Assembly: GCA_002104905.1 (NCBI GenBank)
Contig: MCFE01000158.1
Location: 85,992-149,991 of the forward strand
Direction: 5' to 3'
Source of the DNA: Basidiobolus meristosporus CBS 931.73
Taxonomy: Eukaryota; Fungi; Basidiobolomycota
Length of the DNA stretch: 64,000 bases
Of the stretch, positions 3,837 to 62,976 are shown piece by piece (the first letter of the stretch is position 1; each line of letters opens with the position of its first letter). The position numbers and the translations under genes are program-made. The notes below the pieces were generated by a model. It had not been told where the DNA came from. It saw only the letters and a program-made list of their open reading frames with translations, and searched no databases.

Positions 3837-4060
3837 ATTGTGTATGTGCAAAACAGATCCAATAGCTGCACTGGTATTACAGATGACATATATATATGCA
3901 GGGTGTTTATTTATAGGGGTTCTGTCTCAAATGTGAGACAACCTTGATATTACTTATATCAAAAATTTGATGATCACTGATTTGCAATGGCTCAATTTGG
4001 ATTGCAAAAAAAAAGGGTTGCCGGGATCATTACAAATGTGCGCAATTGAAAGCGATCGCA

Positions 4061-17030: not shown

Positions 17031-17036
17031 AACTTG

Positions 17037-20430: not shown

Positions 20431-20436
20431 GTAACT

Positions 20437-20643: not shown

Positions 20644-21340
20644 TGTTGTGCATCAACATTTAAAACTTAGCCAATTTTACCCCATTTGAAAATCTAGTAC
20701 CCTAACTGATTTTCCCTAACCCAAACATAACAAATCCCAGTTACAGTTTATTTTATCCCACCTCAGAATCTATTTTTAGCTATCACACCTGATCTATTTT
20801 CAAATGGTCATTACGTTATCAACCTATCTGTCAAGCCTTCCCAGGTGATTAGTCATCTGAGATCTATCCAACCACTGTGTAGTTGCCAAGACATCAGTTG
20901 ATTGATGATGTAATTTTCATTTATCTTATGCACCTATGAATACCCAAATTGATTTCAATCAATCCAGTCCCTTGGCGCTTACTAATTCAACTTGATCAGA
21001 AAAGTATAAATAAAGTTTACTGAACCTTTTGGTTTAGTGTGTGTCTCAACAAAATTAAGATTCTGTCTCAGCAAAAATAAGAGTCCAACAATTCCGTTCT
21101 AGTTTCTATCCAAGCCTAGTATATCTAGCACTCCAAAGAACACCAAGCCTAGCCTGCCTAGCAAACAAATATCATTGTCTTTATAGCCAACCCAGCTATA
21201 TCCAAGACCAATATTAGATCAGAATCTTTCTGCTAATATTTCCGCCACTCTCTGACAATTCTAACATTCCGCACTTAATTGTCCCTTTGGTTCAGTTAAA
21301 CCATTCAAGAGTTTTATTACACTTTCTTTTGAATACAACA
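20644..21340 (+). repeat. Family-B LTR (3' LTR of chromovirus)
   Basis: TGTTG...CAACA termini, near-identical to 53401-54097. Confidence 0.9.
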
Positions 21341-41167: not shown

Positions 41168-44008
41168 TCACATGAACAAATACACCAAGGAGCCCACAAA
41201 CTTGACAAGGGAGAGCATGGCGACCGCCCAGAAAATGAAGGTCAGATAGAAGTGCTTCTGATCCACTACTCTGGGGGTGGTCAGGTTGAACCAGGAGCTT
41301 GTCTCGATCGCCTGGAACACCAGGATCAACACCACATTCGAGAAGATCCACGACAAGACAGTGCGAGTGCGAAACAGCCGGTAGTAGTCCTCTCTCTTGG
41401 TTTTGGCGTCGCGTTTGGCCTTTTCGGCCTTGGTGGGCACCGACAGGTCCTTCACCGTCTCCTCGTAAATCGCGTTGATATCCTGTCGCTGGCTGGGCAC
41501 CGCCAGGGCTGCCACCTCTTTTCCTTGCTTGGTGGTCTGGACCATGACCTTGCCGAGATCACCCGCCGAGCCGTTGTCCCCTTTCGTGCCCCAAGAAACA
41601 TCGTGAGTGTTGCAGAAAGCATACACCATCAGGATGTTCACGTAGGAGGGAAAGATGAACAAGTACTGCACGAACGAGGTGACCATGTGCCACGGGTCCA
41701 GATACAAAATCGAGGAGACGAGATACAGCCCGTATGTCGAGGCCAGCGCGATCAGGATGTTCATGCTCTCCTTGGCGAACGGGTGGGCCAGCAGCTTGCG
41801 GACGTTGTTGGGATCGGAGAAATACATGTAGAGGCTGAATCCCACCGTGTACATCATGATCCCCATGATGAACGCGAAGATGAACACGCACAGCAGATAG
41901 ACCGCTTTGGAGCCCTGAGGCCGGTTGCCCAGCGACAGAACGAACTGAACAATGATCCCCAGCAAAAAGATTTGTCTGGCGATCGGATACACGATCCACG
42001 AATATCCATGGAATGGGTCAGGGTTGTAGGGATCGTAGTCGTGGCTGACGGAGCCATCCGGGTTCTTGGGCATCGCTGCATCGGACAAGAAATAGAACGT
42101 CAGGTAGAAGTTCCCCTAACGGAATGAACCGGGGTTAAGACCAGACTGACATGCCCCCCACATTGCACTACTTACCAAGGTGAACCAGCTGAAGAACAGG
42201 GAAATGATGTTGTAGATGAATTGAATAAAGAACAGAAACTTGCGGCATGTGCTGTGCTCAGTCCCGTAGATTTTCATCCAGTGCGCGGTGGCGAAGAATG
42301 CCGCGAACAGCGAACCATTGAGCCAGCGTCTGCGCTGGGATATAAACTCGGACCAGTTGTCAGGGACATCGGTCTCTGCCTTGGCGGCCTTGATAACCAT
42401 TAGCAATCGATATCGAGGCGGCATCGACAATCGAATGTTGGGCCTACCTTCACATATTTCAATACCCATCTGGAGTTTTTCTTGGCCACCAGTTCAAAGC
42501 ATAGTATCCGATCTTCGGCCAGATACATGTTCGCCTCAAATATCCCGCCTGTTGCATCTTCGCCGTGCATGGTTTCCCCTTTGAAGTAGGAAGCTAGCGG
42601 CCCTTCATTTGAGGCGGTGTTCTTCAACGCGGTATAGCGGTACGCGGAGAAAGCGCCGGGCAACACGCTAATATAGCCAAACACACTCTCCAATGGTTTG
42701 TCCAGGATGTTGCTCATCTTGTATTCGAAGTTCTGCGCGGCAACCAGCGGGTTCAGCAGACTTTTGCCTGCGATGCCTAATTCAGCGCAGATCTCTCCAC
42801 ACGCACCACCAACATGTGGGTTGCTGTGGAAAGCTAGTAAGGGTTAGCCATGATCAAGCCAATATCAGGTGCTGTGACCGCTCACCTTTCCACAAATGAT
42901 AGATCGAGGTGTTATGGGGCCTGGTGCCGACATCCAAGAGGATGCAGACGTTGGGATTTAGCAACGGGGAAAATCCATTGAAGAACCAGCGGTGGGAGTT
43001 GAGCTTCTTCTTGTTCTCCTCCTTGAGACAGAACAGGATTTGTGTAGGCATGTAGCTCTTGGCCTGGGATTTCTTGGTGATAGGCTGTACCTGCAAGTTC
43101 TTGTCGATGTAGAGTTGCGTGGTATACTCGTACAGATGGGCGGTGACGCCCTTTCCGTTAACTGAGCTCTGGGCTATCCCATCCTGGTAGACTCCCATGG
43201 CACTCAGTACTTTGAGCACTCGGGGATGAACTTTGGTACGCCCGTCCGCAACGATGCACACCACCACCTTGGTCCACCCCTCTTTCCCCCATACACCATT
43301 CCGATCCTTGCTGCACAGGTGTCGAATATTTTTGATAACTCCGCTGAACGTTTTGATGAATAGGTTCTCATCCTCGTTGTACATGGTCATCACTATAAAG
43401 ATCTCCACAGGCCGACCATAGAGAACCTGGCGTAAGGTATACTTCGAGAACGTGAATTGGTCGGGCTCACAAGTAACTGCTGTGTATCGCATATGGGTGA
43501 ACTCCCTCTGTTCTTTATGTATTGCGGAGGCCAAAACCTTGTCCGGCACTGGGCAATCTAGTACCAAGTTACCACTGGTCAATTCGATGTGCTTGAGGCC
43601 ACGGTGATGATCTTCTACCTGCGATTGAAGCTGGTAAGGATTAACTGCCCACGGGAAGCTATCTTGATGGTGCAGCCGCCTTCGTGGATTCTCTGGCTCT
43701 GGCGGCGTCTGGAAAGGAAGCGTTGGATAGAATTCAGGATAGCCAGGATTTCCTGGGCTCCCAAATAGCTCGTGAGCAGAAAACTCTTGCGGATAAGTGA
43801 ACCGGGGGTCGATGGGGGGCTCCGGGGGATAATAGTACGGTTGCGGATACATTTCATGTGGAGCAGGGTAGGGATATCCAGGCTGTGGATAGGGCAGTAC
43901 GCCAAGATTGCTACGTTCATCCGACGGAATGGGATACTGTGAAGAGTCTTCTGAGTAACTGTGTTGAACATTCGGAGGAATCGAGTCATTATTATAAGGT
44001 CTGTACAT
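41168..44008 (-). CDS. chs: Division-1 chitin synthase (GT2), multi-exon
   Basis: [46 protein letters not shown] and HDVSWGTKG motifs, plus a C-terminal TM region. Confidence 0.97.
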
Positions 44009-44923
44009 TTTTTGGCTGGAATTCAATATAAATCGATCATGAACTATAATAAAAAGGTGGGATTAAGAGGACAGAGAAAGAAAGCCCAAGGTTGGTGAAA
44101 GTGCGAAGGAAAAGTGGAGATGGTCATTCGAAACTAGGAGATTTATTGAGCTAATGTATGTACTCCTCCGGGGAATATTGCCAGTTGTTAATAACCTTAA
44201 TTTTCCTTTTCTGGATGTTGTTTCTCATTTAGGAGTATTTAAGGGGTGGTCTTTAATTCTTGAACCCGTTGACCGTTGTTCATTAGTGCTACTGAGACTT
44301 GGTCCGTACAAAGTGAGGTATCTTTGTTCAATTGAGTTAGGCTGGTTTTGGATGGGTCAGACAGTAGTTTAGGTTGACAAATAGTTGGAAGTGGTTCCGT
44401 TTTTGCTTTACTACGACATTGTACCGGTTTTGCTTCGATTTGATTAACATCGCAATCTCTCACCTCGATCTTTTTTTTTTCGATCTCGTTTGTTTTTCAA
44501 CCTTCCGAAATCACTGGAATCCCACAAATCCCCACAGCGACCACAATCAAACAAATACGAATTGATTTCTCTGTTGATTCTTCACTTACATACAGATCCG
44601 CTTACCATAAGCTAACCTTTGCATCTATGGTTTGTTTGCAAATGGCGCGGACCGAGATGAACAACTGAATTATAATACATCTTGTTTGGTTTCCTTCGGG
44701 TTATCGACATAAACTTGATGTTTCGCTTTTTCAGGACATACCTTGTATTAATATTCAAATTTGTTTATTGAAGCATTATGATGCTATCATAAATTTTTCG
44801 AAACTAAAATTATCATGACATTCTATTTTGCAAGCCAAATTCAATCTGGGTGGTTTTAGCGTTCTATGGTATATCTAAGAGGGGTATGCATAGGTTGGTG
44901 TATAGGCTCAGAAATTGATTTTT

Positions 44924-45457
44924 CTACTCGTGCCAAATGAAGGATACTCCTTCCCCAGGCCAGAAGTTGACATAAGTGGTCACATATGGACCACCATATC
45001 CGTTGATGTAGTAGTTCCAGTCACTGGTGTACACACTTCCGTCGTCATTGATGCTCTCCACCACTGCGACATGTCCGTACTCGTCACAGCCTTGGTAGCC
45101 TGGCTGGATGGCAATGATTGAGGGGACGCGGGGCTCATCAGATACAACCCATCCTGGGGTGTTCATGGCACTCTCCGGCCAGGTCTTGGCATTGCCCCAC
45201 CACTGAGTGTGGTAGCAGGTGAGTTGGTAGTAGCGAGCATCGGCCCAGTCGGTACACTGACCATTGTCGAAGCGGAACTGGAGAGGACATTCATTGTAGA
45301 GCTCACTAAGCACAGTGAGGTTGTCTTGTACGTCAGCGGGCTTGGTGCAGTTAGATGGGCTCTGAGTGGCAGCAGCAGGCAATGCGTGAATACCGGAGCT
45401 CAAGAAGCTAGTTGTGGCCAAGACGGCAGCAGAAAAAAGCGAGGCGATTCTGACCAT
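44924..45457 (-). CDS. Secreted CHAP-domain amidase/peptidase, copy 1
   Basis: Signal peptide, GQCT (Cys68), WGNA..W, GHVAVVE (His129), SDWN. Intronless, with upstream TATAAAT at 45511-45517. Confidence 0.92.
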   Translation of the reverse strand: MVRIASLFSAAVLATTSFLSSGIHALPAAATQSPSNCTKPADVQDNLTVLSELYNECPLQFRFDNGQCTDWADARYYQLTCYHTQWWGNAKTWPESAMNTPGWVVSDEPRVPSIIAIQPGYQGCDEYGHVAVVESINDDGSVYTSDWNYYINGYGGPYVTTYVNFWPGEGVSFIWHE

Positions 45458-46013
45458 TGTTTGTAAGTGAGGAGACTTGAAGATGTCGAATTAGCCACCA
45501 GTCGGTTCTTATTTATACATGGATTTTCACCAGAAAATGAGGTTGTCAAGCTCAATCCAACGGTCATTGGATCGAAATCTACTTACCTAATTTAACCTAG
45601 TACTTCTGGATACCTGCCAAAGAAGGACGGCTTGTTTACTAATATATTCCTCAGATTTCTGGATTGAATCTGGACTGTATTTCCCAAATGTAGTAATTAC
45701 TACTTCTGATCGTAAAATAAGATATTACATGAATATCATCCGCATTCTTGTTGATTCCTTGATCGGTAAAAAAGATAATAAATGATTTGTTTTTCTTGCT
45801 ACAATGCTTTACCTTTATATCATCAAGTTCAGTTCAAATTTTATACATTGGATGTCACTTTTGTTTGCTCGTCGGACGTTTACGAGGAGATTCAAAATAA
45901 ATCAATAGGCTTATAGATATTTTTATTTTTATATGCAAATTGGGTTTGTATGGTATCAAAGCTTTTCAATTTCACGGTATTTTAAGTGGTATTTTCAAGA
46001 TAAATTGACTATT

Positions 46014-46547
46014 CTATTCATGCCAAATGAAGGATACTCCTTCCCCAGGCCAGAAGTTGACATAAGTGGTCACATATGGACCACCATATCCGTTGACGTA
46101 GTAGTTCCAGTCACTGGTGTACACACTTCCGTCGTCATTGATGCTCTCCACCACTGCGACATGTCCGTACTCATCACAGCCTTGGTAGCCTGGCTGGATG
46201 GCAATGATTGAGGGGACGCGGGGCTCATCAGATACAACCCATCCTGGGGTGTTCATAGCACTCTCCGGCCAGGTCTTAGCATTTCCCCACCACTGAGTGT
46301 GGTAGCAGGTGAGTTGGTAGTAGCGAGCATCTGCCCAGTCGGTACACTGACCATTGTCGAAGCGGAACTGAAGAGGACATTCATTGTAGAGCTCACTGAG
46401 CACAGTGAGGTTGTCTTGTACGTCAGCGGGCTTGGTGCAGTTAGATGGGCTCTGAGTGGCAGCAGCAGGCAATGCGAGGATACCGGAGCTCAAGAAGCTA
46501 GTTGTGGCCAAGACGGCAGCAGAGAAAAGCGAGGCGATTCTGACCAT
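46014..46547 (-). CDS. Secreted CHAP-domain amidase/peptidase, copy 2
   Basis: Differs from copy 1 only at H24L and I151V. TATAAAT at 46601-46607. Confidence 0.92.
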   Translation of the reverse strand: MVRIASLFSAAVLATTSFLSSGILALPAAATQSPSNCTKPADVQDNLTVLSELYNECPLQFRFDNGQCTDWADARYYQLTCYHTQWWGNAKTWPESAMNTPGWVVSDEPRVPSIIAIQPGYQGCDEYGHVAVVESINDDGSVYTSDWNYYVNGYGGPYVTTYVNFWPGEGVSFIWHE

Positions 46548-47139
46548 TGTTTGTAAGTGAGGAGACTTGAAGATGTCGAATTAGCCACCAGTCGGTTCTT
46601 ATTTATACATGGATTTTCACCAGAAAATGAGGTTGTCAAGCTCAATCCAACATCTATTGGATCGAAATCGACATCCCAAATACGGGCTAGTGTTCATGGG
46701 CTCCAACCATTCTAAGGAATCTATCAGATGCCTGGGATTTCTTTTGTTAGATTTCAAGAATGACAATCACTTATAATAAAGGATATTGATAGGACAGCCT
46801 TTTTGCCACAATTCTTACGATACTTTTTGAGATAAGCCGATTCAAATCGGTAAGTAGTGGGTGGAGTTATATTTATCAGTTGGGTTTAGTTGATGCTTGT
46901 AATAATTATGGTGTAGTTCTCTTAAAGGTATGCCATTTTGAGTTAATCATCTGGACACTGATCGTTGAATAAGTAATACTTAGTATTGGTACTTTATATT
47001 GATCCAAAAACACAATGAAAGTTTCGATTCAAAGATTTTATTGGTATATGTACGATTTTATCTAAATGGTATTTGCACTCAGTTGGGTATCAAAGAAAGG
47101 TGTGTATAGGTTGGTGCATAGATTCAGAAAATGATTTTT

Positions 47140-47673
47140 CTACTCGTGCCAGATGAAGGATACTCCTTCCCCGGGCCAGAAGTTGACATAAGTGGTCACA
47201 TATGGACCACCATATCCGTTGACGTAGTAGTTCCAGTCGCTGGTGTACACACTTCCGTCGTCATTGATGCTTTCCACCACTGCGACATGTCCGTACTCAT
47301 CACAGCCTTGGTAGCCTGGCTGGATGGCAATGATTGAGGGGACGCGGGGCTCATCAGATACAACCCATCCTGGGGTGTTCATAGCACTCTCCGGCCAGGT
47401 CTTGGCATTGCCCCACCACTGAGTGTGGTAGCAGGTGAGTTGGTAGTAGCGAGCATCTGCCCAGTCGGTACACTGACCATTGTCGAAGCGGAACTGGAGA
47501 GGACATTCATTGTAGAGCTCACTGAGCACGGTGAGGTTGTCTTGTACGTCAGCGGGCTTGGTGCAGTTAGATGGGCTCTGAGTGGCAGCAGCAGGCAATG
47601 CGAGGATACCGGAGCTCAAGAAGCTAGTTGTGGCCAAGACGGCAGCAGAGAAAAGCGAGCCGAATTTAACCAT
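47140..47673 (-). CDS. Secreted CHAP-domain amidase/peptidase, copy 3
   Basis: Differs from copy 2 only at residues 3-5. TATAAAT at 47722-47728. Confidence 0.92.
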   Translation of the reverse strand: MVKFGSLFSAAVLATTSFLSSGILALPAAATQSPSNCTKPADVQDNLTVLSELYNECPLQFRFDNGQCTDWADARYYQLTCYHTQWWGNAKTWPESAMNTPGWVVSDEPRVPSIIAIQPGYQGCDEYGHVAVVESINDDGSVYTSDWNYYVNGYGGPYVTTYVNFWPGEGVSFIWHE

Positions 47674-49041
47674 TTTGTTGTGTGGATTTTTAGATGCTGA
47701 TCAGGTGCCACATTGAACAGTATTTATACCACATCTAACATATCATACGGTTTCCATAAATCCAATCCCCTACCAGAATCAGCTCCATGTTTCAGGACTG
47801 CGTACAAATTTAGAATGTCAATCCTGGTATTCTCTAGTTCGGAGCTCATGACCGTCGTTACCATATATGGAGCCTAACGTTACAACACTTTCCAATCTTG
47901 ATGGAGCCTAGCCTTTGGTAGTTAGCAAACGATAACGACACTAAAATGAGAAGCTATTGAATTGCTAATATCCAATCACAATAAAAGCCTGTGCTCAGGG
48001 AAAATTTGGCTATATGTGATGATCTATTGGTTCAATAGTGGATCTTACCAATTGACTACGGCAAGGGTCACTACAAAGAATAGTGGCACTATAGAATAAA
48101 ACAGTATTTCCTAAGGATGTTCGTAAACATTCATAACCACAAAAGGGAAGAAAAGAAAAGTTTCAATCAATAGAGTCAGGCCCTATCAAACTCTTATTCA
48201 AAGCTTCCTACCTGGAGAGCACTAATAGTCCCAAGTCTGCCCGCTCAAGGAATGCGTCACAAGGTTCATCGTAATTCGGTAAATATGACAAAGGTAGGGC
48301 TGTTTTCGAACCTTTTGTACCAATGTTTATTTAGGCGTGGTATCGCCTCGAACGATAGGTTGTCACGATGCAATCTAGATTCATGATCTGACTCAGGAAA
48401 TTTCCGCATCTGAAAGATAGCGCAGAACGTGGAAAAACCTCGAAAGTGATGGTATAGTCTTTATGAGCTCTGTAGAATGTTATCAGTTCGATAACGTAGT
48501 ATTCTTCCGAAACTCTTCAAATATAGAATATATAGCGCTAATATAAGATTTGATAACATTTACTTCCAAGCTAAGCCACACAGAAGGGGAATACTGTTCG
48601 TGTAGCTATCTGCCAAACATTTCAGCCAGAGTACCTGTTATTTGTTGCAACCTTCGTCGCCACTATTGCTTTATTCCTTTCCTTTGGCTTTTTTCCATCA
48701 TCACGATTCTTCGTTTTTTGTAAAGAAACTATACGATTCACGGGATCGGTGCTATGACCTAAGCAACAAACTATCCTCTACTCCTGGCTCAAAGCAGAAG
48801 CTTCTTTAATACCGCTTTTTCATGATATCTGCAGTAATGAATTTCAATACATGAAGTGCGTAGTAATGTCTTGAGTAATCTGCATGTGTCGTCTTTGTGG
48901 CTCCTGATATGCAAAAGCAGGCGCTGTAAGTGTAATCACAATATTCATCATATTTATTATTAAAATTGACATGTCAAAGTATTGCTCACTAAGCTACCGA
49001 GTTATCTTTGGACAAAGGTTCATTATTTTTCGAGAAGTAAA

Positions 49042-49446
49042 TTAGCATCGATTGACTGTCAATTGACCCTTGCTAACATCGTTGACGTTGGGGAAATCGA
49101 CTGGGACACTACCGCACTGGTTGCAACCATGGTCGGCTAAGAAGCCAAGAAGTTGACAGGCCTTCCACTTGGGAATAGTGCGGTCTCCCATATTCTGAGT
49201 GAAAGCACAGAAGTTACGGCGAACAGGGAAGTTGGTGATCTGCTCGTTGACGGTGATGATGTGTTGGCCGTTGCTGAATTGCTGATTTTGATCACCGCCG
49301 CATAACTGTCTCATTTCAGCGATGACATGCCCGAAGTTGCCAACAAAGTTACAGTCACTTGAACCTCTGCAGTTGATACCGAGCCCATTTGTGGTACCAA
49401 TCGAGAGAGCGAAGATGGCAGCAGCTGTAGCAATTGATTGTTTCAT
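49042..49446 (-). CDS. KP4-family killer-toxin-like secreted protein, 134 aa
   Basis: Signal peptide MKQSIATAAAIFALSIGTTNG, then LGINCRGSS..C, HGC..CGSVP and NDVSKGQLTVN, matching the Ustilago KP4 signature. Intronless. Confidence 0.93.
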   Translation of the reverse strand: MKQSIATAAAIFALSIGTTNGLGINCRGSSDCNFVGNFGHVIAEMRQLCGGDQNQQFSNGQHIITVNEQITNFPVRRNFCAFTQNMGDRTIPKWKACQLLGFLADHGCNQCGSVPVDFPNVNDVSKGQLTVNRC

Positions 49447-50620
49447 GATTCGGACCGAAAGTAAAATGCGGCTTTGAGCAATGCTTTGGACAATGTCTGT
49501 TGTTGCCATTTATACTGTTGCTTGTTTGAGACCATGCTGGGACACAACCCCCGCTTCCGCACTGCTTATCACAGGGGACAAGTTTTTTTGCCCCATCCTC
49601 CTGTTGTGCTATATTACTAAATGCCCTGTGGTACCCTGTGGCCTGTTTATGCTGTATCCAGTCTACTGTGCCGTTCACCTGCTTTATCAATCAAAGCTTG
49701 TTGCCAAATGGTTATTGTTGGGAATGATAGCTTCACCACTGCCGCGTGGAGATTTCTGCTAATAGCCCAAAAGGTGGAGCATTGATGCTTACTATATTTT
49801 TTCCCTTTTTTTCTAAATCCAGCAACTCTAGAGGTGTGACAATCACAAATGAAAAACAACCCAATGTGGTCTCCAAATTCGCTATTCGAGGCTATTTTCC
49901 CGAAACTTATTAATCGTCAATGAGTACCAGTACGCTCTTACCATCGGCCCGAGAAAGGTTTTTTGAACTATAATTCCACTTTTACCTCATAGCGATATCC
50001 TCTCATCAATTCAGGGTAATGGAAAGAGTGTGAGCAAGCCTTGCTAGTCACATCAAGTTATTCGCTTGGCTTAGTAGCAAACAGTCAACGCGAAACAGAG
50101 GTTCTCAAAGACACAGCCAATGTCTTAGGTTTCTCAGTATAAAGTACATCAATTGCCTCATCATCCGATATTCCTAGTAATTGCATTGTAAGTTATGGTG
50201 TCCACCTTTGCGTACTTGCACAGGTGATTATATTATGGGAAGAGCGGTTGTTTCTTCCAAGTTGACCGGTACAACATACTAACCTGTCAACCTAATCTTT
50301 TTGGCAATTGTCCCCACAGGTTGCATCAAAGCGCAACACCAAAAGCATATTGAGTAAGGATTGCCTGATGGGAGAAGTTACCACGTTTCAACATTCGACT
50401 ATTATGGCTGGGATTTGCTCCAATTTTATAGCGCATAAAAGATTGCTTTTGCGATTTGAGCATTCGACCCACCGAAGTAGGAATAGATATGCACACGATA
50501 ATTGACCATTCCTTTCCTGGTGCCGCTTGTGACTAGTTTGGAAGTGGGATGCCAAAAGTACCAAATCAGCATTTCTTCTAATACCTCATTGGTCAAGAAT
50601 GGAGGAAAGCTAACGAGAAA

Positions 50621-51063
50621 TCTGTTAACCGTTAATTGGCCTTTTCCAGCATCTTCGACATTGGGACACCACACTTACGTGGCTCTGAACCATGTCTGTT
50701 GATGACATTCATACTGTAGCTCGTTTGAGACCACACAATGCCAGATTACAAGTTTCTCGTCCCATCCCCCTGTGGTAACCCCATTCCTTACATGCCGCAT
50801 CCAGTCTACAGTGCCACTCACCTCATTATCCAATGAGCTTTGCACCTAAATATATATAATGCTAAGATATCTTGATGTTTTCCAAAAGCAGGCTTACAAT
50901 ACCTTTGCCACTTTACTTCCAAATCTAGCACCATCGGAGGAGTGACAATCATTGATCCAAAGCAACCCAACAGGAACTATAGTTCCACCATTAGAAGCGA
51001 TTTTCCCGAGACTTATTAATACCGACTAACCTGGCACCGATTACGCTCTTACCATCGGCTCGG
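50621..51063 (-). pseudogene. Internally deleted KP4 paralog
   Basis: PNVEDAGKGQLTVNR (50665-50621) matches the KP4 C-terminus. Region 50683-51063 is a diverged copy of the KP4 upstream region 49488-49950. Confidence 0.75.
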
Positions 51064-52049: not shown

Positions 52050-53400
52050 GTGTAGCTGAGGGGAATTTGTAGGTAAGTTAATAAGAAGTGATGATAGTTC
52101 TTCAGTGCTCAAGACACTATTCAGTGGGAAGGGGGGTAGCAAGGGGGTAAGAATGATTTGTGAACAACATTAATGAGGGGAATATGATAAGGATTGATAT
52201 TCATCATGAAGGGAGTGTGCTGCTTCAGATATTGCTGCCAAAGGTCTGTCATGTACTTCAGGTAGGCCAGCTTGGGTTTTTTGACTGCAGAATATAGTGA
52301 GCAAACTTCTTGACTTCAGGATCTCCAAGTATAGTTCTCCAGCAGGAGCCAGGTGTAGTGTGGTGTGTTCTCTTCCAGGCCTTAATCAGTGGGTTGTTGC
52401 AGTGGTGAAGTCTGAGATATAATCTGGTTCTAAGGCAGAGTAGTCTGATCTAATAGGGCATAAACCCAAGAGCACCAAGAATAGCATTTCTGTAAGGGCA
52501 TTCAGGCAGTTGAGGCACTAGGGATGTAATGCACCAGACTGCAAATTTGTCAAGCTTAGTGAAGTCTCTAGAGGTAAGAGAGAGAGTGGTAAGCCAAATT
52601 CCAGGACAGGGAAGACAAACTGCTTGAGTAGAAGGAGGCAGCTGGGAGCTGAAGTCATATGAGGAGTAACAGCCAGTAGCTTGTGGAGTGCTTGTCTTGC
52701 CAGGATAATCCTCCTCTTCAGGTGTGCTCCAGAGTCTAGTCCAATAAGAGGGAAAGAAAAGCCAAGATATGTAGCCAAAACTTGAGCAGGTAGAGTGCAG
52801 TTCTCCAAGTTGATAGGACAGCCCAAGGTTACTGTCTTTGGAATTGGAAGCTGGAGATTATTCTTCTGCAGATGCTGGTGGATGGTCTGGGAGTCTTGTT
52901 GCACACTGGAGGAGGATATTCTGATGTCATCAGCAAAGAGAGTGACCAGGTAGTCAGCTGAGAGTCTTGGGAAGTCATTCAGGAAGATGGCAAACAGTAT
53001 AGGACCAAGCACAGAGCCTTGAGCCACTCCATTAGGAACTGAGAACACTGGTGATTGCTATCTTGGGTGCAGAATTCTTTCTTGTGGATCCAGAAACAGA
53101 GACCTGACAAGGAGGGTGAGAGATGTATTGGAGAAGCATTGCAACTTAGACCAAAGCAGATTTCTGTCAACTGAATCAAAGGCCTTAGTAATATCAGACA
53201 GAGCAGAGGGATACTTGCACTGAAGTGAGTGATCTTGGCTAAGTATGACTACATATTCCAAGGAGAGGCCAGGAGCAAAGCCAAATTGTGCAGGGTGAAA
53301 CTTGAGGGAGTCAGAGTAGAGCTCTTGAGCAAGCAGAAGCTCAAACACCTTTCTGCAGGTGGGCAGCAGAGATATTGGCCTGTAGGAGCTAGGATCCAGG
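52050..53400 (-). mobile_element. Non-LTR (LINE) retrotransposon RT relic
   Basis: QFGF, DITKAFDSV, GVAQGSVLGP.LF and LFADD motifs with stops. Confidence 0.9.
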
Positions 53401-54097
53401 TGTTGTGCATCAACATTTAAAACTTGGCCAATTTACTCCGTTTGAAAATCTAGTACCCTAACTGATTTTCCCTAACCCAATCATAACAAATCCCAGTTAC
53501 AGTTTATTTTATCCCACCTCAGAATCTATTTTTAGCTATCACACCTGATCTATTTTCAAATGGTCATTACGTTATCAACATAGCTGCCAAGCCTTCCCAG
53601 GTGATTAGTCATCTGAGATCTATTCAACCACTGTGCAGTTGCCAAGACATCAGTTGATTGATGATGTAATTTTCATTTATCTTATGCACCTATGAACACC
53701 CAAATTGATATCAATCAATCCAGTCCCTTGGCGCTTACTAATTCAACTTGATCAGAAAAGTATAAATAAAGTTTACTGAACCTTTTGGTTTAGTGTGTGT
53801 CTCAACAAAATTAAGATTCTGTCTCAGCAACAATAAAGAATCCAACAATTCCGTTCTAGTCTCTATCCAAGCCTAGTATATCTAGCACTCCAAAGAACAC
53901 CAAGCCTAGCCTACCTAGCAAACAAATATCATTGTCTTTATAGCCAACCCAGCTATATCCAAGACCAATATTAGATCAGAATCTTTCTGCTAATATTTCC
54001 GCCACTCTGTGACAATTCTAAGATTCTGCACTTAATTGTCCCTTTGGTTCAGTTAAACCATTCAAGAGTTTTATTACACTTTCTCTTGGATACAACA
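53401..54097 (+). repeat. Family-B solo LTR
   Basis: TGTTG...CAACA, near-identical to 20644-21340. Flanks CCAGG and CTCAG do not form a TSD. Confidence 0.9.
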
Positions 54098-54454
54098 CTC
54101 AGTTTCAGTTTTGACAATTCTGGATGCAAGATCACTGATCACAAATGTTTGACAAAACATCTAAGATTGTTAATCCAATACTTACAAAAAAATTTTTTAA
54201 ACGCGACTTAAAAGTTTTTTTATTTTCAAACCAAATTTAAACCTGATAACCAACTTGCGCATGTAAAATTTGGATAAATGTTTAGCCAAACCTATATAAT
54301 TTCTAATTCTACATTTACAGATACGTTTTATTTTTTAATTCGCAAAATTTTTTTCCAATTTTTTTTATCCCAAACCCAAAATCGCGTTTAAAAACTTTTT
54401 ACGCAATAAAAAACTCAAAACAAAACTTTTGATTTAACAAAACTATTTCCAGAA

Positions 54455-54750
54455 ACTTTTGTCTACTCATGGAAAACTTTTTTAAAACTTAAACATGATA
54501 TTTATTTCTGCCAAAATATGTCCCAAACTTGGACAGGACATTTTATTTACCCATGAATAAAACTTTTTTCAAACTTAAAACTATCTTATTTACTTATGCC
54601 AAAACCCATTTTAAACTCAGACAAACCATTTTATTTACCCATGAATAAAACTTTTTTCAGACTTAAAACTATCTTATTTACTTATGCCAAAACATATTTC
54701 AAACTTAACCCATACATTTTATTCACCCATGGAAAAACTTTCTCAGACCC
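54455..54750. repeat. 88-bp AT-rich tandem repeat, about 3.4 copies
   Basis: CATTTTATTTACCCATG units at 54539, 54627 and 54715, with a diverged unit before them. Confidence 0.85.
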
Positions 54751-55072
54751 GCAAAAAATATTTTTTAAAAATTTGCTGAGAAACATAAAAAATTATTAAA
54801 AAACAGAAAAATTGGCAAATAAAAAAAATATAAACTCTTAACCGTATATCTACATTATTAATTAAATTCTTTTCATGCAATTAACCCACAGTTATAAAAA
54901 ATAATAGTTATATTGTCCGCAAAAGGCAAACCCATCCTAACACCAAATATTAACCTGATAATGTCCATTACCGCTAACCAAAATATTTACACAAAAATAT
55001 ATCTCATATATACACGGAATAACCATAACTATTAACCAGAATATTTACGCTGAAAAAATAACCCCACTTATC

Positions 55073-56137
55073 TCACATACCAATATATTTTTTCACCTTA
55101 CCCACCAAATTATTATACGTATATGGAATCAGATAATTTTTAACCAACGGAACAACACCATCAGAATTCTCGATTAATGCGTTAATCTCACATGAAATCA
55201 GATTTATTTGATCCCCAGGCAACATATTTTTGGACAAAAGTCTTATATTTGATATTAACATATCTCCATTGACATAATTTTTGGCAATCTGTCCATTTAA
55301 AATATCTTCGTCAGAATATTTTTTTCCAAGAAACTCTTTGTCAGAATATTTTTTTCCAAGAAACTCTTCGTCAGAATATTTTTTTCCAAGAAACTCTTCG
55401 CCTAAAATTTGGTTGCAAGAAAAATCTCTATCATCAGAATTTTCGCAAAAAACATGTTCACCCAAAGTTTGTTCATATAAGATACTATTTGCTAGTTTTG
55501 TATTCTTGAAACCTTTGGAGTTTGATGCAATTATTTGTTTGTTTAACGTTTGTTTTGTAATATCATCTTTTGACACAATTATATCCTCTTGAATGATAGA
55601 TTTGGTGGGTAATTGTGTTATAATATTATTTGGCGCAATTGTAGTTTCTTGAATAACAGATTTTTCGCGAGATTATATCATAGTATTATCTGGCACAATG
55701 ATATCTTCTTGATAAAAAGTTACGTTAGACGCCTGTGTTATAGTATTATCATCCATACAATCACCATCCTGATATTTTTCTTCGCTTGATAAATTTTTTG
55801 TCCCAGAACAAATATTTTTAGAAATCTTTTCGTCGTTAAAAGTTTTGCAAATCCCATCCTTATCATCTAATACGGTTTCATGAAGATGGCGCAAATGGTA
55901 TCCGCAAAATTTTTGATCTTTTGCTTGATATTTGCATCTTTGTCCCTTGTTTTTACCAGTTGTTAATTTTGCCATGCACTGAAATGTACGTGGGACATTT
56001 GTATAATACGCATTAAGAAACGCATACTGAGATTCGGTTAAAGCCTTAAATAGCTTGCATACTAAAATTTCTGATTGATCTTGTATCTTCTGTCAAAAGT
56101 CGTCACAAAAAATTTGTATTAACAAATCCGAGTTCAT
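55073..56137 (-). pseudogene. AT-rich intronless gene of about 354 codons with a C-x8-KG-x2-C-x9-C-x2-H-type motif and two in-frame stops
   Basis: One frame runs from ATG 56137 through TGA (56095-56093) and TAA (55675-55673) to 55073, merging two track ORFs. It contains QCMAKLTTGKNKGQRCKYQAKDQKFCGYH. Confidence 0.7.
55311..55400. repeat. 30-bp coding tandem repeat x3 (EEFLGKKYSD)
   Basis: TCAGAATATTTTTTTCCAAGAAACTCTT(C/T)G three times. Confidence 0.95.
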
Positions 56138-56214
56138 GTAATTTGAAAATGAAAGCCTTTTTATGAATATGAAACAGGATCGAGACCCAGTCAATTTTAG
56201 TTTTTGCTATGGGA

Positions 56215-57013
56215 TTAGGAGTAGCAATCTTGATATCATCTGCATAGAGAGTTAGTAGTGGATAGGGAGAGTCTGGTGAGGGGCCTTTTGGAAATAAAGG
56301 AAAGTCATGTAGGAATATCACAAATAATAAGGGACCTAGTACAGATCCTTGGACTACTCCATTTGGAACCTCATAAGTCTCTGATGTACAACTTGGATGC
56401 AAAATTTTGGCTGAGTTCTCACAAAATAGAGAACGTACAAGAAGGGTCATTGGTAGTGTGGTAACTGCTAATAGCTTTCTCCAAAGCAGAGCTCTGTCCA
56501 CAGAGTCAAAGGCTTTGGTAATGTCAAACAGAATGGTTGGCAATGAGAATTGAAGTGAATGATCATGGCTTAGCACCACAGCCATATCCATGGAGAGTTT
56601 GGGCAAGAAGCCAAACTGAGAAGGATGGAATGGATATAGTTGAGATTGCAAGGATCTTGCTATTATAAGCTCAAAGATTTTCCGGCAGGTTGGTAGGAGT
56701 GAAACTGGCCGGTAAGAACCTGGGAGTGAGTGTTTCCCCTTCCCTTTGTATAAGGGTATTACATTTGCCTGTGACCAGGCCTTTGGGGTAGTCAATTGTT
56801 GGGCACAGATAGAGTAGAATGGGAGAAGTAAGTGACTCATTTTGGAGTAGCACACCTGGAGTAGATTGTAGGTAATCAAGTCATGTCCAGGTGCAGTATT
56901 TGCAGGAAGCTTCTTTAAAATTTTCTCCAGAAGCTTTGCTGAAACCACAATTGGAGATGTTGTACTGCTAGATATGTCACCAGTATGGTAGAAAGGAGGA
57001 GTGGGATGCACGG
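56215..57013 (-). mobile_element. LINE RT fragment (same family as 52050-53400), cut by an LTR element
   Basis: APGHDLI, SYRPVSLL, QFGF, DITKAFDSV, GVVQGSVLGP and YADD motifs. Confidence 0.9.
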
Positions 57014-58084
57014 TGTGGTGGTGTATAAGTCCAAGGGAGAGATACGTCCAACACTTCTCAAGTGTTTTGTGTGTGGGGTGTTCACTGGGTGCAATAACCT
57101 CTGGCAAAAGCTTGCTAGGAATACTTGGGTTCTGTCTCTAATCTAATGTGAAGGGGAATAAAGCCACAAGCTTGTCAAGGGAAAACTATTGAGCTACAAT
57201 CCCCAACTTAGTTGGCGTCTTAACAAAAGTATGTGCTGGGTTCAGCGTCCTTTGAGATGACAATGTACTAAAGCTTCCAAAGTCAAAACAACTGTAAACT
57301 CCACCAGCAGGGACTTGATAAGAATGCAGCTGTGGTCAATAGTTACAAAGACAGAAAAGTATCTTTGCCTGTACAAGAACAAACTTGGGAAAGAATCAAA
57401 TATAATAAAAGATACCTACTCTGAGTATTCCTCACAAGTAGTGCCTCCAAGGTCAGTTGGCTGTCAGCGCGGTGTCCTGGGAGTGTCCTGTGGTCTAGGG
57501 TTGGAAGTTCAGGTAGCAGCAGGTAGCAGTGATCACACTAATTAACAAGTCGGTATATTGATAAAAGGGATGATGATTTATTGTTGAGGGATAGCCTCCC
57601 TTATATACTTTTCTCACTGGCTAAGTGATTACTAATCATGGTGTTCCAGAAGGTTCTGGAGATCAATAGAAATCTTAATGACATCAGAATGACCTAAGAA
57701 TGTTCTAAGTAGGTGCCGGAAGGTTCTAAGAGGCACAGCACATCCAACCAATCAGGAATCAGTATTCTGAAACCTATGTAACATGGGGATACCATATATG
57801 GTATGGAAATGGTAGGGATGGTGACACGGGCTGATCATGTGTCACGGGTACTGGCGCGGGTACTTGCCTAATATAGAAGTACTTATAGCTAGTAATCTTA
57901 CATAAAGTGAGGGGTAACTTATGCAATAAGGTAAGCAGGTGTGATAGTCAACTGGCTTATGGGATAGTACTGATTGGGTAAGACAAATGGGATAAAACTA
58001 AAATAAGTGTAGTAGAGATATAGGGAAGTAGAAAATAAGGGAATGAGCACATCTGTCAGTGGGTGTCACTGTCACCCCACTACA
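57014..58084 (-). repeat. 3' LTR (1071 bp)
   Basis: On the minus strand TGTAGTGG...CCACCACA, preceded by PPT GAGAGGGGGGTGGA. Confidence 0.93.
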
Positions 58085-58123
58085 TCCACCCCCCTCTCAG
58101 CTTTGAACTTGGGTCAAAGCAAA

Positions 58124-61100
58124 CTAATCTTGATGTGCAAAATTCCTATGCTTGAATAACTTAAGTCAATTTCCAGCAACTGGTGCTCTCAACTGGGTGT
58201 TGTCAAGCTCAGATATGTAATAACTTCCATTTCCAATCACTTTGGAAATGAGGTAGGGGCCAGTCCATTTGTTGTCAAACTTCCGACTCCATTGCTTGTC
58301 CAAGGTAGAATCATAGAGTAATACTGGGTCTCCTAGTGATAGTGGTTTTGGTCTTGTTGGGTGTGATTTGTCAAAGGGCACCTTGTTCTTTAGTCGTGTA
58401 TGCTTAAGTTGTTCAGCAGCTCTGCTGATATTCAAGTCATGGTGATCAAGTTGCTGTATGCGAGTTGCAAGGAGGTCTTCAGTCTGCATATTGGATCTCC
58501 AATTCAATGAGTTCCAAGTGACTGTGTTTAACTCAACTGGTAGTATGCAGTCATGTCCATAGAGTAGCTTGAATGGCGATAATCCAGTTGTCCTCTTAGT
58601 AGTAATTCTATCTGCCCAGAGTGCTAGATGTAATTGCTGTGGCCACAGTGTTGTGTTATTCTCACAGGTCTTGACAAGAGAGTTCACCAATGGTCCATGT
58701 CCTCTCTCTATCATTCCATTGGCTTGAGGGTGGTAAGCAGTTGTAAAAGCAATGTGTATCTTGTACTTTGAGCACAACTCCTGGATCATTTGGGATGTCA
58801 TCTCTCCTCTGTCAGCAACAAACTGTTGGATGCAGCCAAATCTGCAGATGATGTCTTCAAGTATAAATCTCCATATGGTATGGCTCTTGTTGTTGGGCAA
58901 GGCTCGAGCCTCTGCCCATCCACTAAGGTCATCTCTAGCAACAATCAAGTACTTTTTTGATCCAGCTGTTGGCATGTGGACAAGGTCGATACCAACCTTT
59001 TGCCATTGACAGATTGTGTAAGTAGGATGCAGTGGTTCTTCATAACGCTTTGAGGATCTCTTCTGGCAGGCTACACATGACTCAACAAAGTGTTGGATAT
59101 CATAGTACATGTTTTCCCAGTAGTACCTCTGAGCTGTAGTATTGTATGTGGCTTCTTGTCCTCTATGTCCTCCTGGTTCTCCTTGGTGGATACTTGTCAT
59201 GATGTTCAGTTGCTCTTGAGGGGTAGTGACTACTCTTCTTGGCATAAGTCCAGGTTTCACTCGCTTAAAGAGAAGATCATCTTTAAGATAGTAGTGGTGT
59301 GCCTTCTTCCTGAGTTTTCTAAACTCCTGAATATCCATCCAACTAGGTTTCTTAAGTGTCCTTAGATATTCCTTGATAAGACTCCAGGTAGTTCTCTCTT
59401 GGTCTTTGATGGCAATCTGTTGGATCTCTGCATCAATAATATCATCAAAGTGAGGGTCCAAGTCTTCAAATAATTGTGGTCCCTTCCTGGAGAGTGCATC
59501 AGCCACAACATTTGTCTTGCCAGGGATATGTTTGACCTCAAAGTCAAACATTTTCAGCCATGCCATCCATTGGTTTGTGGCATCATCAAGTAGGTCAGGC
59601 TTGTTGATCATTCCTATCAGTGGCTTGGCATCTGTCTCCAGGATAAAATGTGTCATGTAGAGTTGTGACTTCAGTTTCCTCAGCATCTTCACAACTCCTA
59701 GTAGTTCTCTCTTAATCTGTGAGTATCTTTGTTCTCTAGGAGAGAATAGGCAGCTCTCATATCTGCAGGCATAGCGGTTGCCATCTTCATCATCTTGTCC
59801 AAGTAGTGCTCCAGCTCCTATGGGGCTTGCATCCACTGTCAAAATAGGTGGGCATTCAGTGTTTTGATAGTCAAGAGGTCTCAGAACTGGTGGAGATACT
59901 AAGGCCTCTTTCAGTAATTGCATGGCTTCTTCTTGCTCTTCTCCCCAGATAAATGGGGTGTTCTTTCTCTGTAGTCAGTAAATTGGTTCTGCTATCTCAG
60001 AAAATCTTGGGATCCAGATCCTAAAGAACCCACAAGCAGCCACAAAGCCACAAGCTTGTGTGAGATTTGTGGGGGTAGGCCAGTTGCATATCTTTTGTGT
60101 CTTGGAGTCTCCAGGTGAACGACCAAAGGTGTTGCATTTTTGTCCAACAATGGATATCTCTGATACACCAAAGCTGCTTTTCTCACCACTGATGGTGAGT
60201 CCAGCTTCTTCAATGGCTCCTAATATGGCATCATTGTCTGCAATATGGTCATAGACAAACTTTCTTACTCCAGGCATAACTTCAGTGGTGTCCCGGAATT
60301 TTGATCCTTTGATGCCTATGTCATCCACAAAGACAGCAAGTTTCTCAGGTATAAACTGATACAGCACATTTACCATGCATCTCTGGAACTGAGCCACGGA
60401 GTTTGTAGCCCCTTGGCTGAGTCTTGTCATCCTTAACAGTCCAAATGGTGTCTGAAGTGCAAACATATCTCTTGATGTCTCATCAAGGGGGATCTGGTCA
60501 TATCCTGAGTAGAGATCATATGTTGAGTAGATGGAGTGGCCACTAAAGCTTTCTGCAAAGTCATCAATAGATGGGGTATAGCAGCATCTCTGATAGTGAC
60601 AGCATTTGCAGGTTGCATGTCTTGAATGAATCGGAGCTTTCCATTCTTCTTTTTGGTCACAAACCATCTGTTAGCATAGGGTCCATGGCAAGGTTCTAGG
60701 ATACCAGCTTCTATCTTCTTCTTAAGTAGGTCATGCACATCAGCTTGGAGTCCTCTGGGCAGTGGGTAAGGCTTAAATGACCAGGGTGTGTGGGGCACTG
60801 TATGAATCTTGATGGGTTTTTCAACCAATGTCTTTAAGAGTCCCATCTCCTTGTCATTATATGAGAAGACCTTATCATGTCTTTTCAAGGTCTCCTTGAA
60901 TAATAGTATCTCCTCTGGTGTTAGGTTTCCATCACCAATGATAAGTTGCTTAAGTCTCTCAGGTGTAAGTCGTATATCATCTGGTGTTTTTTCTGGTGGT
61001 CTAATGTAATCAGCAGGTCAAGATCCATCAGTCAGTGGGGTAAGTGATGGTCTAATCTTCTGTTCTACTGTCTTGTATTTTGTTTGAACCATAGCTGTTT

Positions 61101-62124
61101 GCTCCTGTATACCTAATGAGCAGCTCCAAATGTTGGGGTGTATATTGTCAGGCTCTTCATCTTCTTCCATAACAAGATGTGCCTTCTGGCAAGCAGTATG
61201 TGTCCTCTTATTGTTGGGTGTTACACCACAGAAGGTTGACTGTAGTCCTGGGTTGGATCCTTGTATGGTGTACCATACTGACCCATTGGAATAGTTGGTA
61301 GTTGTAGCCTTAGTACTGGTTTCCCATGGTCTACCTAGCAGAAGGTCAAAGTTTGCCTTCTGGCAGATGAAGAGGGGAAGCCAGACCTTGATTCCTTGTA
61401 CCTCAATAGGAAACTTGTGTACTACACCATAGAGTGGACTAGATCCTGAGTTTGCATCAGTCATGTTCCATCCAATATCTCTATCAACAGGCAGTAGCTC
61501 CTTGCTTTTAAGTGTCTTCCAGAAGTCTAGCGGCATAACACAAATCTCTGAGCCACTGTCAATATGGCAGTCAACAGGGTCATCATATATATACCCTTTC
61601 ACCACAGCAGTTGCAACTGAGTAAAAGGTCTTATATTCAGTAGTGTTGTCATCCTTTTGGTGGTCTTCATGGTTTGTCTGAATTATATGAGTGTCCATAT
61701 GTTCAACAGCTTGTTGTCTTGTTCTAAGCTGCTCATCAAAGGTCTTCCTAACAGATGGGGATACACTCATGATTTCTCCAACCGACAAAGTGAGGTTCTG
61801 CTTCAGCAGCTTCTCAGTAATCAGTTGAGGGCTTGAGTAGCTTGCTATCTTTGAGGTCATCTGAAAGTGAGGCAATGGATCTTGGGTGGGCAGCATACTA
61901 GGCCTCTTGTCAATAACAACTTCAGGTTCTTCAAATCGTGGTCTTCTAAGGATGGGTTTGGCAGGTTCTTCAGGGAGGTGTCTTTTGGTAGCAAAGGCAT
62001 CAACTTCATATTGTCTGTTGTCAGGGCTGCTTGGATTCACTTTATGAGTCCCAATAGGGGCATCAACAGTAATCTTTCTGGTTGCTGAGTCAGATTTCTG
62101 GAAAAGGGCTCTCATCCCTCCTCT
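58124..62124 (-). pseudogene. pol (PR-RT-RNase H-integrase), disrupted
   Basis: In-frame TGA at 61018-61020, 59975-59977 and 58166-58168, and a 1-bp frameshift near 60573-60576. Confidence 0.92.
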
Positions 62125-62976
62125 TCAGAAATTAGTGGGAATCCTTCTTCCTTCCTTGTCAGCAAGCATTCCATCAGCATCAAACTGTACTGCTCCTTCT
62201 CTGAGTAGCTGACTAAGCTCTGAGCATTCTTGTCTGGCATGCTGAGTAGAGTCACACCAGATGCAGTGCCTGGGCAAAGGTCTTTGTCCCTCAGTAGCAA
62301 CCTCAGCTGAGCCATTAATCTTGAGGGCTAGCTTCTGTAGCTGTTCAGCAAGTTGGTCAATTCTGTTGGTAGTGTAGGTCTGATTGTCAGCAGCAGCACT
62401 CCTTGGCTCCTTGGTTGACTGGTCTGGCAGATTAGATGTCAGGAGTCTCATAAAGGTAGAAGTTTGCTTTGCCTCTAGGAGAACACGTTTCATCTCTGCA
62501 AAGCAAGGAATGCCAGACTTGTCATCCTTGGCTGCATGTAAGTCAACTTTCCTTGCCAAGTCCTGGGGAAGCCCTTGTGCAAGGTAAAGTGTCATGGTAA
62601 ACTCAGTTATAGCCTGGGACTCTAGGAGTGGCTTGGCCATATCTTCATACTGTTGAATGAACTCTTCAAGTGGTAGCTTGGAAAGTCCAGTTCTTCCAAA
62701 GTGCCTGAGGTCTTCAATTCCATAGTATATCTGGGGTCTACCATACTCGGTCTGTAGGTAGGTCTTCATTAAGGCCCAGTCAGTGAGAATGTCTCCTTGT
62801 CTGAGAAGCTTAGTGGTAATATCATTGGTGCAGTAGTAGGGGAAGTCTTCAGCCATTTCTTGTTCAGATAGGCTGCACATCTTGCAGAGCTTCTCCCATT
62901 TGAATATGAAGCTTTCCACATTCTTTCCATCAAACTGTGGGGCTCCATGTGAGAGTGGTAATGGCATAGAGTTCAT
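62125..62976 (-). CDS. gag-like ORF
   Basis: APQFDGKNVESFIFKWE start and CIWCDSTQHARQEC zinc-knuckle-like motif, in frame with pol across a TGA. Confidence 0.85.
   Translation of the reverse strand: MNSMPLPLSHGAPQFDGKNVESFIFKWEKLCKMCSLSEQEMAEDFPYYCTNDITTKLLRQGDILTDWALMKTYLQTEYGRPQIYYGIEDLRHFGRTGLSKLPLEEFIQQYEDMAKPLLESQAITEFTMTLYLAQGLPQDLARKVDLHAAKDDKSGIPCFAEMKRVLLEAKQTSTFMRLLTSNLPDQSTKEPRSAAADNQTYTTNRIDQLAEQLQKLALKINGSAEVATEGQRPLPRHCIWCDSTQHARQECSELSQLLREGAVQFDADGMLADKEGRRIPTNF

Follow-up and report, generated by a model that had tools for sequence, protein, structure and literature searches.

Bacterial-type CHAP genes and a KP4-like gene in a duplication-prone cluster at a retroelement border of Basidiobolus meristosporus

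Bacterial genes acquired by eukaryotes include the GH25 lysozymes, which have been transferred across domains, and the 'dae' amidases of ticks and mites, which are derived from type VI effectors. Here we describe a stretch of the fungus Basidiobolus meristosporus CBS 931.73 in which three genes for CHAP (peptidase C51) proteins, a bacterial type of domain, lie beside a gene and a gene remnant of the KP4 killer toxin family. The window, meaning the whole stretch of DNA that was analysed, is 64,000 nucleotides long (assembly GCA_002104905.1, contig MCFE01000158.1, positions 85,992 to 149,991), and the five units occupy 44.9-50.9 kb of it. A 20.4-kb piece of the contig, reached through an exact match of its KP4 protein, agrees with the window at 100%. 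We consider the locus likely to be a set of secreted-protein genes that is prone to duplication and adjoins a retroelement zone, and not a demonstrated two-part system. Judging from their sequences, the genes in the cluster are probably antimicrobial.

The closest precedent is found in the oomycete Saprolegnia parasitica, which has seven secreted CHAP genes that are duplicated and attributed to bacterial transfer (PMC3681718). KP4-like families have been described in fungal genomes, among them KP4L in Fusarium (PMC9506348) and Zt-KP4-1 in Zymoseptoria (PMC12382754). Gene uptake from bacteria has been noted in Basidiobolus, so far mainly for secondary metabolism (PMC7466969, PMC12400927). The four intact genes of the locus are already public, being annotated on the contig as one 'killer toxin' and three Peptidase C51/CHAP proteins, and we found no discussion of them in the literature searched. 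CHAP/peptidase C51 or KP4 in Basidiobolus is not mentioned in PMC7466969 (main text), PMC11291939, PMC9391592, PMC8778642 or PMC12382754. An earlier note on this DNA, made from the letters alone, knew of no description of the pairing in a fungus, and none was found in this literature; the silence marks an adjacency that nobody has studied and does not point to a system.

The CHAP genes and their bacterial relatives

All five units are on the minus strand in the same orientation. They are as follows:

44924-45457, minus strand: CHAP1, an intronless gene for a predicted secreted, single-domain CHAP (peptidase C51) protein of 177 amino acids (Pfam CHAP; a 177-amino-acid gene in GenBank)
46014-46547, minus strand: CHAP2, a tandem copy with 98.9% amino acid identity to CHAP1 (Pfam, sequence comparison, AlphaFold2 model)
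47140-47673, minus strand: CHAP3, a tandem copy with 97-98% amino acid identity (Pfam, sequence comparison)
49042-49446, minus strand: KP4-like gene of 134 amino acids, signal peptide cleavage predicted before LGINCRGS, 8 Cys in the mature part (Pfam Kp4)
50621-50830, minus strand: KP4 remnant, in which a duplicate of the KP4 5' flank runs into the final ~15 codons (tblastn, blastn, alignment)

The earlier note had listed the same units, and domain searches and alignments bear it out on their presence, on their common orientation and lack of introns, and on the N-terminal hydrophobic, signal-peptide-like stretches of the four intact genes. CHAP1-3 each match Pfam CHAP (PF05257) with E=1.1e-16 and 61.5 bits, against a cut-off of 26. 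The catalytic domain covers approximately residues 57-177 and aligns with the CHAP proteins of Staphylococcus saprophyticus (2K3A, E=7e-10) and S. aureus (5T1Q). The active-site positions are Cys68 (in GQCT), His129 (in GHVAVVE) and Asp146 with Asn148 (in TSDWN), and they align with their equivalents in 2K3A. This C68/H129/D-or-N146/N148 pattern, CH[ND]N, is present in 35 of the 36 Basidiobolus sequences and 55 of the 64 other sequences in the alignment. An AlphaFold2 model of CHAP2, built with 100 homologs, has a predicted local distance difference test score (pLDDT) of 94-98 over residues 61-177 and of 76 over residues 51-60. When the model is compared to the PDB with Foldseek, the top 25 matches are CHAP-type peptidoglycan hydrolases and related CHAP-domain proteins; S. 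aureus 5T1Q is the best (E=3.1e-7), and the CHAP domain of the phage phi812 hub, PcsB, LysGH15 and LysK are also among them. As modelled, the CHAP proteins adopt a papain-like alpha+beta fold. A pair of cysteines, Cys81/Cys124, is found in 14 Basidiobolus paralogs including CHAP1-3 and in none of the 64 non-Basidiobolus sequences, which mostly have G or A at those positions. It may represent a disulfide gained after transfer.

The N-terminus of the CHAP proteins has a basic residue followed by a 12-residue hydrophobic core with a mean Kyte-Doolittle value of 1.7-2.0, and the predicted x-A|LP cleavage site is kept among the paralogs. By these features, it reads as a typical eukaryotic signal peptide. 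Each intact gene in the cluster also has its own TATAAAT box, 55-60 nucleotides before the ATG in the CHAP genes. These are identified as sequence motifs only:

45511-45517, minus strand: TATAAAT box of CHAP1, 60 nucleotides upstream of the ATG
46601-46607, minus strand: TATAAAT box of CHAP2
47722-47728, minus strand: TATAAAT box of CHAP3
49508-49514, minus strand: TATAAAT box of the KP4-like gene

CHAP1-3 share 97-99% amino acid identity with one another and lie in tandem repeat units of 1090 and 1126 bp. Any two copies are separated by 13-17 nucleotide differences, 11-12 of them synonymous. The amino acid changes are confined to the signal peptide (positions 3-5 and 24) and a conservative I151V; CHAP3 differs from the others at residues 3-5, and residue 24 and I151V differ with respect to CHAP1. 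With 115 synonymous and 419 non-synonymous sites, the ratio of non-synonymous to synonymous change (dN/dS) is about 0.05. On that basis, selection maintains all three copies as functional genes, and what they encode is in essence a single mature enzyme. Outside the open reading frames (ORFs), the repeat units are only 79-90% alike, and therefore the ORFs have been kept more alike than their flanks. The high similarity of CHAP1 and CHAP2 reaches about 130 nucleotides upstream of the ATG and includes the promoter and TATA box (45458-45591 versus 46548-46681); the upstream region of CHAP3 is unlike either.

The CHAP family in Basidiobolus amounts to at least 40 genes: B. meristosporus has no fewer than 21 clusters and B. 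ranarum no fewer than 19; these are lower bounds obtained from a word-indexed search with clustering at 90% identity. An exhaustive HMMER search of 1.84 billion representative sequences gave 951 hits. The top hits that were looked up are all from Basidiobolus, and the next named ones are from Thermogemmatispora and Dictyobacter, both Ktedonobacteria. A separate pattern scan using one genome per species across 185,579 prokaryotic species gave 101 matches, 95 of them confirmed as CHAP relatives. Those listed are all Chloroflexota: Ktedonobacteraceae, Thermogemmatispora, Dictyobacter, Thermosporothrix and Tengunoibacter, the remainder being metagenome-assembled genomes labelled only Chloroflexia or Chloroflexota. 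They have 45-59% identity over CHAP residues 62-176. In these bacterial proteins of 260-390 amino acids, the CHAP domain is the C-terminal third. In the single sequence examined for what lies before it, a Thermogemmatispora relative (P0210), the N-terminal region is long and there is a hydrophobic stretch resembling a transmembrane segment.

The sole other eukaryote in which this CHAP subfamily was found is Entomophthora muscae, with three proteins (E~1e-15) that have a signal peptide. In the maximum-likelihood tree that was built, the fungal sequences, 41 from Basidiobolus and 3 from Entomophthora, fall on one side of a branch with an approximate likelihood ratio test (SH-aLRT) support of 95, and Basidiobolus alone falls on one side of a branch with a support of 75; the tree is unrooted and comes from about 120 columns and a quick search, with long Entomophthora branches. 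A version rooted on a long-branch sequence, which is from Entomophthora muscae, was uninformative. The GC content at third codon positions (GC3) of the CHAP genes is 60-64%, like that of neighbouring host genes, and therefore fits an old transfer. The distribution agrees with one old acquisition in Entomophthoromycotina and later expansion, and the family was probably acquired once, by an ancestor common to Basidiobolus and Entomophthora. Because the tree is unrooted and has the limits just given, we only infer the donor, which would be a Ktedonobacteria-like member of Chloroflexota, and the direction of transfer. With bacteria as their nearest non-fungal relatives, a fungal genomic context and eukaryotic signals, the CHAP genes have the marks, at the sequence level, of a gene transferred from a bacterium to a eukaryote.

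The KP4-like gene and its remnant

The ORF at 49042-49509 on the minus strand matches Pfam Kp4 (PF09044) with E=1.1e-27 and 97 bits, against a cut-off of 27.8. Translation most likely begins at the Met at 49446, for a product of 134 amino acids: the ATG farther upstream, at 49509, shares bases with the TATAAAT box, and the GenBank model is also of 134 amino acids. The protein matches the Ustilago virus toxin UmV-KP4 (PDB 1KPT) with E=1.5e-10, and the alignment begins at the first residue of the 1KPT chain. The LGINCRGS sequence is invariant in 16 KP4 homologs. The Atlas model of the exact sequence has a predicted template modelling score (pTM) of 0.78 and a TM of 0.77 to a KP4 cluster. The residue aligned with Lys42 of UmV-KP4, which we take to matter for activity, is Thr. 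Given that replacement, the mechanism may differ from the block of calcium uptake by UmV-KP4.

The named relatives of the KP4-like protein are mostly in Ascomycota, at 35-46% identity, and apart from a second copy of the gene in the same genome, which is 98% identical, nothing matches it at more than about 48%. Matches are also seen in Physcomitrium and Riccia. One of the closest relatives (P0055, from GCA_015689235.1) is on a contig of 9.9 kb, part of a very large assembly, and there adjoins genes for a PTR2 transporter and a galactosyltransferase. B. meristosporus has two KP4 lineages: one consists of the window gene and its second copy, the other of a five-gene tandem array (L082, MCFE01000791.1) and a single gene (L083). 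The window gene is on a long branch apart from the other lineage. Three genes of the array (12829-13224, 14666-15061 and 17035-17430) have public models of 117 amino acids that start at an internal Met (MVLLTQVDA...), and tblastn finds full ORFs of 132 amino acids including a signal peptide; the public models of these three look N-terminally truncated. Between the window gene and its second copy, there are 8 synonymous and 3 non-synonymous differences, the latter clustered at residues 33-38, and dN/dS is about 0.1. By this measure, the KP4 gene is under purifying selection.

The earlier note was right that a KP4 remnant lies next to the intact gene, and it implied more of a gene than is there. 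The flank part, 50830-50682, matches the 5' flank of the intact gene at 49688-49483 with 75-85% nucleotide identity (blastn). Within about 17 nucleotides of it comes the coding part, 50665-50621, which matches the last ~15 codons with 80% amino acid identity (tblastn). About 375 bp of the coding sequence are gone, and with them the signal peptide and almost the whole mature protein. Frame-shifted pieces upstream of the C-terminal match were considered as KP4 coding sequence and rejected, since DNA comparison assigns them to the KP4 5' flank.

Copies of the block and its surroundings

A second contig of the genome, MCFE01001273.1 (L002, 11.5 kb), is collinear with 52199-47138 of the window at 93% nucleotide identity. 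It carries the remnant, with the same structure by alignment, the intact KP4 gene and the first CHAP gene, and then the contig ends. It was considered as an ortholog in a related strain; that was rejected since it belongs to the same CBS 931.73 assembly as the window, which makes it another copy within the genome, be it a haplotig, a homeolog or a segmental duplicate. Its CHAP gene, at 10703-11236, has TGG (Trp) as the first codon where the window copies have ATG, and the public model uses an upstream start with an intron to give 158 amino acids. This copy may have lost its normal start.

A third block is on MCFE01000074.1 (L001), where three CHAP genes have 92-95% protein identity to those of the window. 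About 1 kb upstream of the first one is a KP4 fragment with 81% nucleotide identity to 49415-49318 of the window; it covers residues 10-43 with an in-frame stop, and the rest is deleted. An isolated piece of a CHAP C-terminus (residues 156-177, at 95% identity) sits at 7488-7553, between the second and third CHAP genes of this block, and appears to be the remnant of a further duplication. Since the window, L002 and L001 all show the KP4-CHAP arrangement, we take a KP4 gene with three CHAP genes to be ancestral and copied as a unit. On the alignments, the three paralogous blocks are copies of one arrangement and count as one event. The description of the locus as duplication-prone in the earlier note thus stands, given these blocks and the tandem CHAP copies.

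The same note proposed that the locus is a co-regulated unit directed at both bacteria and fungi, and that relatives be searched for the linkage. The pairing is seen only in the three paralogous copies in one genome, and linkage outside the common descent of that one block was not seen. There is no partner within 8-10 kb of an array of 6-7 CHAP genes (L081), of the five-gene KP4 array or of the single KP4 gene (L083). In B. ranarum, the nearest CHAP locus (L080) has no KP4 on its far side, and on the other side is a partial CHAP gene, with the contig ending 1.1 kb from the gene, which makes this locus a weak test of the linkage; there is no close KP4 ortholog among the matches to B. ranarum proteins. 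These results, together with the decayed KP4 of L001, do not favour a single dual-kingdom unit. Neither is co-regulation indicated, since each gene has its own TATA box and the upstream regions of the CHAP and KP4 genes share no 10-12-mers beyond what is found in shuffled controls.

The cluster is bounded by a housekeeping gene on one side and a zone of retroelements on the other, in the setting that the earlier note gave for it:

42854-44026, minus strand: 5' exon of a chitin synthase gene (Pfam Chitin_synth_1N and Chitin_synth_1; the GenBank gene model has 837 amino acids)
52518-62976, minus strand: retroelement zone with reverse transcriptase fragments and a Ty3-type RNaseH-integrase ORF (Pfam RVT_1, RT_RNaseH, rve, Integrase_H2C2)

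The chitin synthase gene is the housekeeping-side boundary and lies outside the cluster. The opposite boundary is the retroelement zone, where reverse transcriptase (RT), RNase H and integrase ORFs span 52.5-63 kb. Minus-strand ORFs at 58166-62976 encode RT-RNaseH, integrase zinc-binding and core domains, RVT_1 and DUF4100, and from this domain content the segment looks like a largely intact Ty3-type long terminal repeat retrotransposon. Isolated RVT_1 fragments are at 52518-53048 and 56103-57107. Inside the zone, 54001-56000 is AT-rich (GC 27-31%) with a strongly negative GC skew. A dispersed repeat occurs twice in the window (20418-21340 and 53401-54100) and is 97-98% identical in nucleotide sequence to 3435-4360 of MCFE01001273.1; since the background divergence leaves the locus copies at 93%, the repeat is recent relative to them.

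Interpretation and comparison with known systems

As we see it, CHAP1-3 would be recent tandem copies within a large fungal family. The source of that family would be the C-terminal CHAP domain of membrane-anchored proteins from Ktedonobacteria-like Chloroflexota, with the bacterial N-terminal region and transmembrane-like stretch swapped for a cleavable signal peptide and a eukaryotic TATA promoter. The product would be a secreted CHAP enzyme of about 15 kDa in which Cys68 is the nucleophile and acts together with His129 and Asp146/Asn148. It would cleave bacterial peptidoglycan, at amide bonds or at peptide bonds such as those of the stem peptide. Going by homology, bacteria in gut, dung and soil would be killed or digested by it. 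The KP4-like protein, which is divergent, disulfide-rich and predicted to be secreted, would inhibit the growth of other eukaryotic microbes, and by analogy to its family it is probably a growth-inhibiting toxin for them. On homology, it is reasonable to suppose that CHAP acts against bacteria and that KP4 is antifungal or a toxin. The KP4 gene and the CHAP array would have been duplicated together as a block with their adjacency inherited, and KP4 copies would decay freely, as in the local remnant and the stop-containing fragment of L001. Both kinds of gene are lineage-specific, duplicating and predicted to encode secreted proteins, and they lie beside retroelements, a setting in which genes of this sort often collect. 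Because they share residence where duplicating secreted-protein genes gather, we treat the adjacency as inherited co-location. It most likely reflects a shared home in a fast-evolving compartment and not functional coupling.

Several observations weigh against this interpretation. The CHAP proteins have no cell-wall-binding module, and their substrate could differ from peptidoglycan. The support for a single acquisition rests on a tree of some 120 columns, made by a quick search and containing the long Entomophthora branches. By a rough estimate that assumes about 16,000 genes, a few dozen of them CHAP, random placement would put a KP4 gene beside a CHAP array well under 1% of the time per locus, and the block has persisted through at least two duplications. 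That leaves room for some selective or regulatory reason for the linkage. The corresponding alternative is that the block is a functional, co-regulated unit of interference competition, with selection keeping an antifungal toxin and antibacterial lysins together for joint deployment. It draws on the adjacency in three paralogous blocks, on the common orientation, predicted secretion and purifying selection of both kinds of gene, and on how improbable it is a priori that two small families would be adjacent by chance. However, the three blocks descend from one arrangement and therefore represent one event; and since KP4 contains a stop in L001 and the second KP4 is gutted at the window locus, the pair has not been maintained. 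The loci L081, L082 and L083 are without partners, the upstream regions share no motif, and no close KP4 ortholog was found in B. ranarum. We regard a functional unit of this kind as unlikely. A more elaborate form of it, that the block is a heritable two-kingdom antimicrobial cassette, maintained and multiplied as a whole by Basidiobolus and switched on jointly in the crowded herptile gut, and that KP4 decay is an adjustment of dosage, strikes us as quite improbable. At present, the pairing is an unexplained adjacency and not a system.

A different alternative concerns the CHAP enzymes by themselves: they could be digestive or scavenging enzymes that free nutrients from the walls of dead bacteria and are not weapons, or they could act on an amide substrate other than peptidoglycan, like the CHAP-type glutathionylspermidine (Gsp) amidases, or blunt the host's detection of peptidoglycan fragments. 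A single catalytic domain with no wall-targeting module would suit such uses, as would a large family of many similar secreted paralogs, which is typical of digestive enzymes, and Foldseek also lists Gsp amidase, weakly (E~1e-2). Nevertheless, the closest structural and sequence relatives in the PDB are peptidoglycan hydrolases of staphylococci and their phages, and the bacterial relatives are extracytoplasmic, membrane-anchored wall enzymes. Killing and digesting are also compatible with each other. We think it quite doubtful that this alternative displaces the antibacterial role. Finally, a bacterial-type domain in intronless genes could raise the suspicion of bacterial contamination or an assembly artefact. 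That is rejected by the genomic context of the CHAP genes, which are on a 150-kb fungal contig between the chitin synthase gene and the retrotransposons; the genes also have eukaryotic signal peptides, TATA boxes and host-like GC3, and they have relatives in the B. ranarum and Entomophthora muscae assemblies. We give it practically no credence. Our interpretation remains the duplication-prone cluster.

Basidiobolus lives among dense bacterial and fungal communities in the guts of amphibians and reptiles. If it does have a large, selected family of secreted enzymes that hydrolyse peptidoglycan and go back to Ktedonobacteria-like bacteria, that would be a protein-level route to shape its bacterial neighbours and a source of small disulfide-stabilised lysins.

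The relationships of the proteins to described systems can be stated on three levels. To the staphylococcal and phage CHAP hydrolases (2K3A, 5T1Q, phi812, LysK, LysGH15), they are related by the Pfam CHAP match, the positions of the Cys-His-Asp/Asn residues, and the papain-like alpha+beta fold of the model (Foldseek probability 1.0). They differ in being encoded by a fungus, in having a eukaryotic signal peptide, and in lacking an SH3b, LysM or amidase partner domain; identity to the solved CHAP structures is only 27-32%, and the Cys81/Cys124 pair is extra. The Ktedonobacteria CHAP proteins (Thermogemmatispora tikiterensis WP_112429574.1 and Dictyobacter spp.) are closer, sharing the motifs QCT[DY]WAxxRY and VPSII..Q and 45-59% identity across the catalytic domain, and two independent searches both place them nearest among the non-fungal relatives. 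Whereas the bacterial proteins have 260-390 amino acids with a long N-terminal region, the fungal ones consist of the C-terminal domain only plus a cleavable signal peptide. In the case of Saprolegnia parasitica, the likeness is one of history: a bacterial wall-hydrolase domain in a eukaryote, with a signal peptide added and repeated duplication. The Basidiobolus family differs in that the recipient is in Entomophthoromycotina, the apparent donor is in Ktedonobacteria, and the expansion is much larger.

The KP4-like protein resembles UmV-KP4 (1KPT) and the fungal KP4-like proteins in its Pfam Kp4 domain and in being a small, Cys-rich protein that is predicted to be secreted. It has the mature start LGINCRGS in common with 1KPT, and the HGCxxCGS and GQLTVN motifs are conserved. 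Unlike UmV-KP4, it is chromosomal and in a fungus of Zoopagomycota, and it has 8 Cys, one pair fewer, compared to 9 Cys for 1KPT in the aligned 100 residues. To these known systems, the locus adds a KP4-like gene that travels with one CHAP sub-array through segmental duplications, the repeated loss of KP4 copies, and the presence of two distinct KP4 lineages in Basidiobolus.

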